Assembly: GCA_964234715.1 (NCBI GenBank)
Contig: OZ174284.1
Origin: Podarcis melisellensis
Lineage: Eukaryota
Length of the DNA stretch: 64,000 nucleotides
Strand: one strand, 5' to 3'
The stretch's first letter is position 1, and every line of letters starts with the position of its first letter. This document shows, piece after piece, positions 58,151 to 61,100 of this stretch. A model generated the notes under the pieces. It made no database searches. It was given only the letters and a program-made list of their open reading frames with translations, and was not told the DNA's origin. Made by a program: the position numbers and the translations under genes.

Positions 58151-61100
58151 GGTCAGTATTCTCGGGGGGAGCCTTTCCCCAGGGGACTCTAGTGCAAATG
58201 TTAGATTTTTAGGTTTGCAGGAAACCTGCAAGGACCACGCAAACCCGTTTCATTTAAAGGATTTGCCTCTTCCTTTGTGGGTTTTTTGTTTCGTTTTATT
58301 ATGGTGCTACCGCCTCCCCCCCCCCCCGCAAAATCTTGAACAGGAACATCACCGTTTAAATCGAGCTGCGTCTTTTTATGTTTCCAGGTTAAACCCAAGC
58401 CGTTGCTGCTGCAACTTCTGAAGCTTGCTGGTGCAGAAAAGGAGACTTTTACTATGAAGGAGGTAAGTTATGGTTATTGCACAGAATATTGTGGTGAAAC
58501 TTAATATGAAACCTGTAATAATCAATAGAAATTCATATAAAAATGAAATGGCAATTAAACAAAACGGCTTAAAAGCTAAATAGAAGTTTATCGCTGTAGG
58601 TTATTCTCAGTTCTGCCTTTTTACCTGCATAACTGAACCTTAGGTTCAAGTTCTTGATTGTGCTACAGCTTGATGAGAAACAATTTTAGTTAAAATGTGT
58701 ATAGTAATACTCTTGAGCTCAACTAGGAAGTGTGCTAGTTGATCTTGTATTACATAAAAGTGCATTGTTTTATTTTTGCTCTTACAGGTAATGTTCTATA
58801 TTGGTCAATATATTATGTCTAAACGTTTGTATGATGAAAAGCAGCAACATATTGTCCACTGTGCAAATGATCTTCTGGGTGATATCTTTGGAGTACAGAG
58901 TTTTTCTATAAAAGAATGCAGGTAAAAATATTTTTTACAGCCTGGTATTAAATGCTGAGCACATGTGTTATCTTACTGGCACATTCTTACATGCCAGATA
59001 TTCAGTTTTCTACCCTCCACCCCAACACACCAAGTGCTCTCCTTAACCACTATCTATAGCCAAGGTTTGTTCTCTGTTTGGCTTACCATGATGTGTGAAC
59101 CAGGCCTACATATTGAAGCAGCCCTGTTGTATCTAAGATCTTTTGGAGAGTGCTTATTCCTCCTTTAGATGCTCCTATGAGTTGCCTGGTGACTGGGATG
59201 TCCAGTTCTGTGCCTTTATTTCTTAGACCTGAATCCCACTTACTGTGTTGTCCCCATTCAGTAGCATTGATGTAAAGTAAGCAAAGCCTTTAAATCCTTT
59301 ATTTTTAAAAGGCTCTAGCCTTTAAGGTTCAATCAGTATCAAATGATCCAGGTTTTTACCTCATGTCTTCCAATTTTTTAAATATTTCGTACACTTTTTG
59401 AATGATCACAACTAAGTTTAAATCTAAAATGTTAATTTTTTATTTCATCCCATGTTTGAGTTATGAGGGTTTTAAATTTCAAAAATTTGACAGTTTTGGC
59501 CTTGCCACCAGACTACACAAAAACCTTTAAAACTCAGCCCAGAATTGAGATGTTTCAAAACTAAAAATACCAATCTCTTCAGAACTTCATGGGCTTTAAC
59601 ATGATATGTCACATGATGGGTTTACTTTAAATTTTAACGTTAAGTTACAACATTTAAAATTTTTAAAAGTGATTAAAATTAATATGATTAAAAAGTCCCC
59701 CAAAATGTATTGATTAGTTAATATTTCTAAGAGCTACCTGCAAAATTTCATTTTGGGATCTCAATGGGATCACATTAAGAAAGAAATATTTTGTACATGT
59801 TTGCCTTATTGAGTTCTATTTAGGATAAATGGGTCTTCTTAGAGTAAAATATAACAGAATAAACTAGGCTTCAAACTATAATATCAGTTACTTCAGGCAT
59901 TTCTTTAGAAAATTATTCAATTAAAAGGTATCTGAAAAGCTAGTCAGGTTTTTCTTTTAAAAATTGTTTCAAAGCAGAGGGATAGCTTGCTGTTGCATGA
60001 TAGAAGTAACACTTTTAAATAATTATTGTTAGTACTTCATTTCATTTAAATTTTAGTTTTAAACTTACTTTTGATCATTCAACAAGTGTACAACATATTA
60101 AGAAAATTGGAAGACATGGGGTAAAAATATTGGGTCACTTGACATAATATGACCCTCTGTATTTTATCAGAAGCTAATATACAAATTTTGCTCCATAAGA
60201 CACACCTGACCATAAGAGGCACCTAGTTTTTAGAGGAGGAAAGGGGGGAAGCCCCATTTTTGGGGTGATCAGCTCACAGTTGTGCAACTTCTTTTGCAAA
60301 GAGGAAAAGCCCCGTTTTGGGGGGGATCAGCTCACAGTTGTGCAGCTTCTTTTGCAAAGGGGAAACACCCTGTTTTTTTGAGGATCAGGTGAAAAATGGT
60401 GGGCTTGCTTTGCAAAGGGAAAAAATTCTGTTTTTATGGGGTTCAACTCATAGTTCTGCGGCTTCTTTAGGAAAGGAAAGGGAGCAGTTTCTACAGTTTC
60501 CATACAGCTAATCTAATCAGCCAGTCACATGTCGCTGGGGAAACAGCCTCCGTCTGCAGAACATTCAACAATGGATGCCTGGGGAAGGGGGCAGGGCCAG
60601 AAAAGGAGCCAGCTATCGACCACACATTCGCTCCATAAGACGCACAGACATTTTCCCTTACTTTTTAAGGAGGAAAAAAGTGTGTCTTATGGAGCAAAAA
60701 ATATGGTAGGTAATTGATAGGGGAAAGATCACATAATTTGAACTGCTATTCGGCATGGGGTGGGTCCAGGTTTTTTTTAACCAAGGTGTCGAAAGCATAT
60801 AAATATCTAGTTCATAAACTTTAACTTTTTTTTTTTTTAGACAACTACGTTTGATGATTTCTAAAAACCTGACAGCAGTCAGTCAGCAAGGTAAGCTAGT
60901 TTGCTATAATGATGCTTTTCTTTATCCTGGATGAGGGAAGGATGTGATAATTTTAAGTTGTACAGTAAGGTTGATTTGGGTTGGTTTGACGTCACCTTGA
61001 GGAAGCTAAGCAGGTCAGTTTCTGGATAGTGTCTGGGTTGGTAACTACCCAAGAACTTCATGTATGCTGCCCTGGGTTCCATGATGGAAAACAAATAAAT

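Follow-up and report, generated by a model that had tools for sequence, protein, structure and literature searches.

The MDM2 gene of the window

The sequence analyzed here is a 64,000-nt stretch of contig OZ174284.1 from the wall lizard Podarcis melisellensis (the window, on which all positions are numbered). It carries on its + strand the 5′ coding part of an MDM2 gene, including the four exons that make up the p53-binding (SWIB) region. In this gene, and in the other lacertid lizards sampled, the tyrosine at position 100 (human numbering), which guards one sub-pocket of the p53-binding cleft, is replaced by arginine. An initial reading of the sequence (the original prediction) had listed this change among seven substitutions and concluded that the cleft was strongly remodelled. 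The exons and codons on which our analysis turns are the following.

58083–58151, + strand: MDM2 coding exon A; start codon and N-terminal lid; 100% tblastn match to the P. raffonei Mdm2 protein (P0264)
58388–58462, + strand: MDM2 coding exon B; human residues 28–52; AG/GT borders; same protein in the lacertid entries P0264, P0262 and P0265
58788–58921, + strand: MDM2 coding exon C; human residues 53–96 and two bases of the Arg97 codon; core of the SWIB/p53-binding domain
58791–58793, + strand: MDM2 codon 54, ATG (Met)
58917–58919, + strand: MDM2 codon 96, TGC (Cys)
60841–60890, + strand: MDM2 coding exon D; third base of the Arg97 codon, human residues 98–113 and the first base of the following codon
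60848–60850, + strand: MDM2 codon 100, CGT (Arg)

Exon C is bordered by ag/GTAATG on its 5′ side and ATGCAG/gt on its 3′ side, and AG and GT borders flank all four exons of the SWIB region here and in nine other squamate loci. The 44-aa translation of exon C occupies positions 58788–58919 and the 16-aa translation of exon D positions 60842–60889; the two peptides quoted in the original prediction are present in the sequence as given, and its coordinates are exact. Arg97 is encoded by a split codon, with AG at 58920–58921 and A at 60841.

The window exons were searched singly, and the full-length protein is represented by P0264, which is identical to the window over exons A to D. Exon C alone matches the Pfam SWIB/MDM2 family (PF02201) at 29.6 bits (cutoff 25) and solved human MDM2 chains with E values of ~1e-21, and the best match of an exhaustive search with it is a rattlesnake Mdm2; P0264 has the SWIB domain at 36.5 bits and in addition a RanBP2-type zinc finger and a RING finger. 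When compared with named proteins of squamates, turtles, birds and mammals, the window sequence is of the MDM2 type, with F55 and KE-x-R at 94–97, and not of the MDM4 type, which has H55 and KDPSP. Orthologues were gathered by word searches from the rattlesnake protein and one lacertid protein; the named MDM2 proteins obtained come from mammals, birds, turtles and the tuatara and from 19 squamates.

The 90%-identity cluster of the Zootoca vivipara Mdm2 also includes the proteins of Podarcis muralis, P. raffonei and P. lilfordi, and in all four of these lacertids the RefSeq name is “E3 ubiquitin-protein ligase Mdm2” (predicted entries, already public). The protein encoded by exons A to D is identical in the window, P. 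raffonei and P. lilfordi; that of P. muralis is identical over exons A to C and differs by one residue in exon D. The non-coding DNA of the window is 93–95% identical to that of the three Podarcis loci and 88–94% identical to that of Zootoca. Its 5–6% non-coding divergence from the three Podarcis assemblies indicates that the window comes from a further Podarcis-type lacertid species or lineage and is an independent assembly.

Contigs of four public sequencing runs were compared with the window over positions 58000–61000: X7, an independent DNA sample of the same organism; X4, from another organism; and X15 and X17, RNA-like runs from two studies. None of them lists a difference in exon C or at 60848–60850, and those of X15 and X17 have zero other letters across exon C. 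In contigs of X15 and X17 exons A, B, C and D are spliced together, with joints placed at 58150>58387 and 58460>58786. The joint between exons C and D is placed one base off in these contigs because the transcripts read AGG for Arg97 where the window has AGA. The third base of this codon (60841) is A in the window and G in all nine other squamate loci and in run X4, and the X15 and X17 joints also fit a G there; the A is thus a synonymous difference specific to the window.

The locus is therefore an expressed MDM2 orthologue, that of a wall lizard of the Podarcis type (family Lacertidae). We exclude the alternative that the unusual codons reflect an assembly or base-calling error or a pseudogene, to which we attach virtually no probability: five lacertid assemblies, each independent of the others, carry these codons, the DNA and RNA-like runs agree with them, and the reading frames and splice sites are intact.

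Differences from human MDM2 and their distribution

The human reference for residues 53–95 was taken from solved MDM2 chains, and that for residues 96–113 from the human protein P0236, HRKIYTMIYRNL. The human sequence given in the original prediction agrees with this reference. Against it, all seven of the substitutions that had been listed, L54M, L57I, V93I, H96C, I99L, Y100R and Y104S, are real differences, and residues G58, I61, M62, Y67 and Q72 are the same as in human, as had also been stated. The window differs further by T63S, Y76H, S78A, L85I, P89Q and K98Q.

Alignment of the orthologues exon by exon gives these differences very different distributions. Ile57 occurs in every squamate sampled and also in mouse. 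Gln98 and Leu99 are likewise present in every squamate sampled, Leu99 also in Grus and in marsupials. Ser104 is found in all squamates sampled but Pogona, and in turtles, birds and marsupials, so that Tyr104 looks, from this distribution, like a state derived in placentals. Ile93 is shared with snakes and Met54 with the skinks Tiliqua and Lerista (residue 54 is Leu in human and Ile in geckos); Ile85 is present in lacertids and Paroedura, and H76, A78 (E in Pogona) and Q89 are common to other squamates. Met54, Ile85, Ile93 and Arg100 are common to all lacertids sampled.

As judged from these alignments, then, five of the seven changes (those at 54, 57, 93, 99 and 104) are not special to Podarcis, and only Arg100 and Cys96 (Tyr96 in Zootoca) are lacertid-specific. 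The view of a strongly remodelled cleft was therefore an overstatement, given that most of the listed changes are squamate-wide or shared with other clades. Under the refuting condition that the original prediction had itself set, that the substitutions be ancestral across sauropsids, most of that list falls away, and Y100R and the changes at position 96 survive. In addition, Met54 and Leu99 had been described as MDM4-type residues; they do match the MDM4 sequences compared, yet they are not special to Podarcis. On this comparison, what sets lacertids apart lies only on the last helix of the domain, at the rim of the third (Leu26) sub-pocket, and the cleft is not broadly remodelled.

Residues 100 and 96

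All five lacertid genomes (those of Zootoca, P. lilfordi, P. muralis and P. raffonei, and the window) have CGT as codon 100, and Elgaria, Anolis sagrei, Python, Sphaerodactylus and Lerista have TAT; the two codons are two transitions apart. At the protein level, residue 100 is Tyr in every non-lacertid squamate MDM2 sampled. A wider collection of 284 MDM2 and MDM4 sequences, ~235 of which have a residue at this position, gives Y 199, F 18, R 7, H 3, W 3, S 2, C 1 and I 1 (Sphenodon). Six of the seven arginines are lacertid, and the seventh comes from a fragment of 87 residues whose reading continues beyond the end of exon C. The Phe100 group carries a KEPR-x-LF signature and probably represents teleost MDM2. 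Other reptilian departures from Tyr100 are the MDM2 of the tuatara (P0195), which has Ile100 together with Pro96, and that of the softshell turtle Pelodiscus (P0282), which has His100. Tyr100 is thus not absolutely invariant, and a charged residue at this position is, apart from that fragment, restricted to lacertids in the tally; the aromatic gatekeeper of other lineages (Tyr, or in a few of them Phe, Trp or His) is absent from the MDM2 of the window. Y100R is neither an assembly error, with five lacertid genomes and independent DNA and RNA-like runs in agreement, nor a sauropsid ancestral state.

Position 96 varies more freely. It is His in most squamates, Gln in anoles, Arg in Python and Erythrolamprus, and Pro in Sphenodon. 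Elgaria, Lerista and Sphaerodactylus have the codon CAC (His) here, Zootoca has TAC (Tyr), and the window and the three other Podarcis have TGC (Cys); the position thus changed twice within lacertids, from His to Tyr to Cys.

The matches of two protein searches included no MDM2 from a teiid, an amphisbaenian, Lacerta, Gallotia or Takydromus; the replacement of Tyr by Arg is accordingly dated only to between the split of lacertids from the other squamates sampled and the common ancestor of Podarcis and Zootoca. Similarly, no lacertid MDM4 was present among the 120 matches listed, which did include Rhineura and 12 other squamate MDM4s. Two divergent MDM4-like fragments (P0129 and P0130) are from the tuatara and keep Tyr at the equivalent of position 100. 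Full-text literature searches turned up nothing on the MDM2 of lacertids or on Y100R as a natural variant. The gene was already annotated as Mdm2 in three Podarcis species and Zootoca. Among the MDM2 and MDM4 sequences sampled from vertebrates, the lacertid-only Arg100 is essentially without parallel.

The p53-binding domain and its relatives of known structure

The residues that form the pockets for Phe19 and Trp23 of p53 (G58, I61, M62, Y67, Q72, V75, F86, F91 and V or I at 93) are all present in exon C, and G58, I61, Y67, Q72, V75 and F91 are near-invariant over the 284 sequences. An AlphaFold2 model of residues 20–110 of P0264, made from a 39-sequence alignment, has a mean predicted local distance difference test score (pLDDT) of 93.6. 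A Foldseek comparison of this model with human MDM2 structures gives a template modeling (TM) score of 0.94, a root-mean-square deviation of ~1 Å and 70–71% identity. The SWIB fold is thus predicted to be intact, and residue 100 (model residue 77) is placed inside the last helix, as it is in human MDM2.

The human SWIB domain (PDB 1YCR, 4HFZ and 5C5A) has the same fold, the same Phe19 and Trp23 pocket residues and the same exon structure; the window differs from it by M54, I57, S63, H76, A78, I85, Q89, I93, C96, Q98, L99, R100 and S104. Zootoca MDM2 differs from that of Podarcis by Y96 in place of C96 and by F38, D44, I45 and A65 (lacertid protein numbering). The MDM2 proteins of other squamates (snakes, Varanus, Elgaria, iguanians, skinks and geckos) share I57, Q98 and L99 with the window but have Tyr100 and H, Q or R at 96.

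Among solved structures, the MDM2 of Xenopus laevis (1YCQ) has a naturally variant cleft. It has I54, P96 and L99 and still binds human p53, and it keeps Tyr100. The humanized Xenopus chains used in inhibitor co-crystals (1TTV, 4J3E and 4IPF) have L54, H96 and I99; these changes were read from the PDB chains themselves, a literature search on them having returned nothing. That residues 54, 96 and 99 vary in nature is thus well established, and this variation is relevant to small molecules. Arg100, in contrast, is without a counterpart among the solved chains whose sequences were compared. MDM4 (MDMX) resembles the window in having Met54 and Leu at the equivalent of 99, and differs in having His55 and Pro96-Ser97; the squamate MDM4s compared and that of the tuatara keep Tyr at the equivalent of 100 (Phe in the gecko Heteronotia). 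The Ile100 of the tuatara, the His100 of the softshell turtle and the Phe100 of the presumed teleost group show that position 100 can change, for the most part to another hydrophobic or aromatic residue, but in none of these is it charged.

The roles that have been described for Tyr100 and its neighbors make the substitution of interest. Tyr100 has been described as a gatekeeper: its rotamer, open or closed, determines how large the Leu26 sub-pocket is (PMC2788357; PMC12109074). His96 hydrogen-bonds several inhibitor classes, and replacement of Tyr100 by alanine costs a designed D-peptide 53-fold in affinity (PMC13527210). Because of the roles of residues 54, 96, 99 and 100, the altered nutlin sensitivity put forward in the original prediction would be a reasonable expectation, and lacertid MDM2 may plausibly have a changed affinity for human-type ligands such as nutlins.

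The N-terminal lid

In other squamates MDM2 has an upstream in-frame start codon, read as ..QMCNTKMAS.. in Python, Sphaerodactylus and Lerista. At the corresponding position the window has ACG (58065–58067), as do all four other lacertid loci (L001–L004). With this ATG lost, lacertid MDM2 begins at the ATG at 58083 and its N-terminal lid is shorter.

This bears on one explanation of Arg100, namely that it mainly alters auto-inhibition of the cleft by the lid, perhaps by forming a salt bridge with one of the acidic residues there, in combination with the shorter lacertid N-terminus. In the human protein the lid touches Tyr100 as well as Leu54 and His96 and governs which rotamer Tyr100 adopts (PMC12109074; PMC2788357), and the shortened lacertid lid has D6, E10 and E22 as possible partners for an arginine. 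The argument is purely inferential, however, and the lid is poorly conserved in all squamates; we regard such re-tuning of the lid as having only a slim chance of being the main effect.

Selection on the SWIB exons

The three exons that encode human residues 28–113 (86 codons) were compared among ten taxa, the window and nine squamate loci (P. raffonei, P. muralis, P. lilfordi, Zootoca, Elgaria, Anolis sagrei, Python, Sphaerodactylus and Lerista). Nei–Gojobori ratios of non-synonymous to synonymous divergence (dN/dS) are 0.08–0.15 among non-lacertids and 0.12–0.21 between the window and the outgroups. Within Podarcis there are 0–1 non-synonymous and 1–3 synonymous differences, and between the window and Zootoca 5 non-synonymous differences and 1 synonymous difference.

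Branch and branch-site models were fitted with our own implementation of the Goldman and Yang codon model (GY94). A single ratio over the tree gives an omega of 0.19. When the lacertid clade is made the foreground, its omega is 0.42 and that of the background 0.16, with a likelihood-ratio test statistic (LRT) of 4.28 and P = 0.038, a value that is generous in that the lineage was picked after the data had been seen. The lacertid stem alone has an omega of 0.35, which is not significant in the branch model, and branch-site model A is not significantly better than its null (stem, LRT 1.26, P ~0.13; clade, LRT 0.09); in the branch-site model the site with the top naive empirical Bayes (NEB) posterior is position 100, at 0.975. 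The original prediction had proposed co-evolution with a divergent lizard p53 and suggested branch-site tests; these gave no significant result, and the indirect evidence, which includes the raised lacertid omega of the post hoc branch test, is weak.

Comparison with the remainder of the protein leads to a similar picture. Between Podarcis and Zootoca the SWIB region differs by 5.8% and the rest of MDM2 by 4.8%, and the ratio of SWIB divergence to that of the rest is 1.2–1.4 within lacertids, against 0.2–0.7 in most other squamate pairs, where the SWIB region is two to five times more conserved than the rest of the protein. Erythrolamprus and Paroedura reach ratios similar to those of lacertids without a change at 100. 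Fast evolution of the whole gene was considered as an explanation and rejected, the rest of the protein being only 4.8% different between P. raffonei and Zootoca. These values point to a modestly raised lacertid rate in the SWIB region, which would fit a partial relaxation of constraint there or a small number of adaptive changes; on 86 codons and 10 taxa positive selection is neither demonstrated nor refuted.

They also bear on the explanation that p53 binding by lacertid MDM2 has weakened, with the cleft decaying under relaxed selection and control of p53 moved to MDM4 or to other routes. A charged residue in a hydrophobic sub-pocket, the raised omega of the lacertid clade and the 5:1 excess of non-synonymous over synonymous differences between Zootoca and the window would all be expected of a decaying cleft. 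On the other hand, every residue of the Phe19 and Trp23 pockets is conserved, and over exons A to D the window, P. raffonei and P. lilfordi are without a single amino acid difference (and P. muralis has but one). The omega of 0.42 is also far from reaching 1, confidence in the predicted fold is high, and the gene is expressed and correctly spliced. We consider functional weakening improbable.

The p53 partner and the lacertid cleft

The partner of the cleft is the first transactivation domain (TAD1) of p53, in which Phe19 and Trp23 are constant among lepidosaurs (supplement of PMC10303687). Position 26 of p53 is Leu in Anolis and Pogona, Ile in Gekko and Sphenodon, Gly in Chalcides, Lys in Python and Gln in Thamnophis (PMC10303687); the p53 alignments of that study contain no lacertid. 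Since this position is labile across lepidosaurs, a weakly constrained or compensated change at the sub-pocket formed by residues 54, 96, 99 and 100 is plausible. In jawed vertebrates a Kd of roughly 0.1 µM is typical for p53 and MDM2, and their affinity is reported to be kept, as a tendency, across vertebrates despite turnover of sequence (PMC10303687; PMC10901556).

An alternative is adaptive co-evolution, in which the lacertid p53 TAD would have changed at or near its Leu26 anchor and Arg100 and Tyr/Cys96 would have been selected to restore or retune binding, with a shift in specificity. Several of the observations above are of the kind that this explanation calls for: a two-step change from TAT to CGT that is fixed in Podarcis and Zootoca, a second and successive change at the neighboring position 96, the raised lacertid omega (0.42 against 0.16, LRT 4.28, P = 0.038), the NEB posterior at site 100, the high lacertid SWIB-to-rest ratio, and a p53 position 26 that varies among lepidosaurs. 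Its difficulties are that neither branch-site test is significant, that the branch test was post hoc and its omega is below 1, and that Erythrolamprus and Paroedura have comparable ratios with an unchanged position 100. Moreover, snakes, which have the most divergent p53 motif, keep Tyr100, and so do geckos and a skink with a residue other than Leu at p53 position 26, so that a simple story of co-evolution is weakened. We rate adaptive co-evolution as unlikely, and we are equally doubtful of its more specific form, a re-specified cleft in which Arg100 and Tyr/Cys96 were selected together with a TAD change at p53 positions 26–29.

The reading we favor, and consider fairly probable, is that the MDM2 of lacertids is intact and expressed, that it continues to rely on the Phe19 and Trp23 anchors, and that the change in its cleft affects the sub-pocket under least constraint and was tolerated or compensated. 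Tyr100 was replaced by Arg in the lacertid stem lineage, and His96 by Tyr and then, in Podarcis, by Cys. Lacertid MDM2 would still capture p53 through Phe19 and Trp23. Within the lepidosaur interface, constraint would be weakest at the Leu26 sub-pocket, since p53 occupies it with different residues in different lineages. Such loose constraint could have permitted the gate residue to be replaced, by drift or with compensation. The aliphatic part of the arginine side chain may still be able to pack against the helix, and its charged head might pair with acidic residues that follow the p53 motif or that lie in the MDM2 lid.

Several points weigh against tolerated or compensated change. Both of its central elements, that the protein still binds p53 and that the sub-pocket is relaxed, are drawn by inference from sequence. 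Tyr100 is otherwise strongly conserved and has been described as the gatekeeper of pocket size (PMC2788357; PMC12109074), and in view of the effect of Y100A on D-peptide affinity (53-fold; PMC13527210) a charge at this position could disrupt more than we assume. A change that required two substitutions and was kept in both Podarcis and Zootoca, and a posterior of 0.975 at site 100, fit adaptation as well as they fit drift, and the count of 5 non-synonymous to 1 synonymous differences between Zootoca and the window is to be set beside them.

The interaction of MDM2 with p53 is among the best studied of motif-mediated interactions and is a drug target, and the Arg100 kept in both lacertid genera sampled (Podarcis and Zootoca) amounts to a ready-made natural experiment, albeit one of modest scope that concerns one domain and two residues. 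Lacertid MDM2 could show how much of the cleft the capture of p53 really needs, how the interface tolerates or compensates a charge, and if the third anchor is dispensable in lepidosaurs. Should re-specification be true, the lacertid pair would bind well with itself and poorly with canonical partners and nutlin-class ligands, and would constitute a natural specificity switch at a drug-target interface. The subject fits well with the published program on affinities between the p53 TAD and MDM2 across animals (PMC10303687; PMC10901556), the supplements of which are without a lacertid sequence.

Other features of the gene and the window

Downstream of exon D the MDM2 gene continues with three further coding exons, and the exons for the zinc finger and the RING finger fall past the window end (64000). 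The borders of these three were inferred, those of the first without read support.

62045–62112, + strand: MDM2 coding exon after exon D; 23 aa; from tblastn of P0264 and the list of open reading frames (ORFs)
62233–62293, + strand: MDM2 coding exon; 20 aa; from the ORF list against P0262 and P0265
63594–63754, + strand: MDM2 coding exon; 54 aa; tblastn of P0264 gives 98% over 55 aa

The intron between exons C and D contains very high-copy repeats (59300–60726). In one DNA run the summed contig depth rises from ~10 to 2e4–2e5 at 60121–60322 and 60626–60726, and tandem units of ~57–60 bases are visible at ~60240–60480. The repeats of this intron are probably short interspersed elements (SINEs) or other transposon-derived sequence.

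In the skink Lerista edwardsae the deposited MDM2 protein (P0200) skips the equivalent of exon D and reads on into other sequence; the genome (L009, ~5622–5670) encodes a normal exon D, QLYLMISKNLITINKQ, with AG/GT borders.

Elsewhere in the window there is a run of N at 14237–14457, which is an assembly gap or a masked stretch. The original prediction had also named RAP1B as a neighbor of MDM2, and a RAP1-type first coding exon (19 aa) is indeed present at ~3931 on the + strand.

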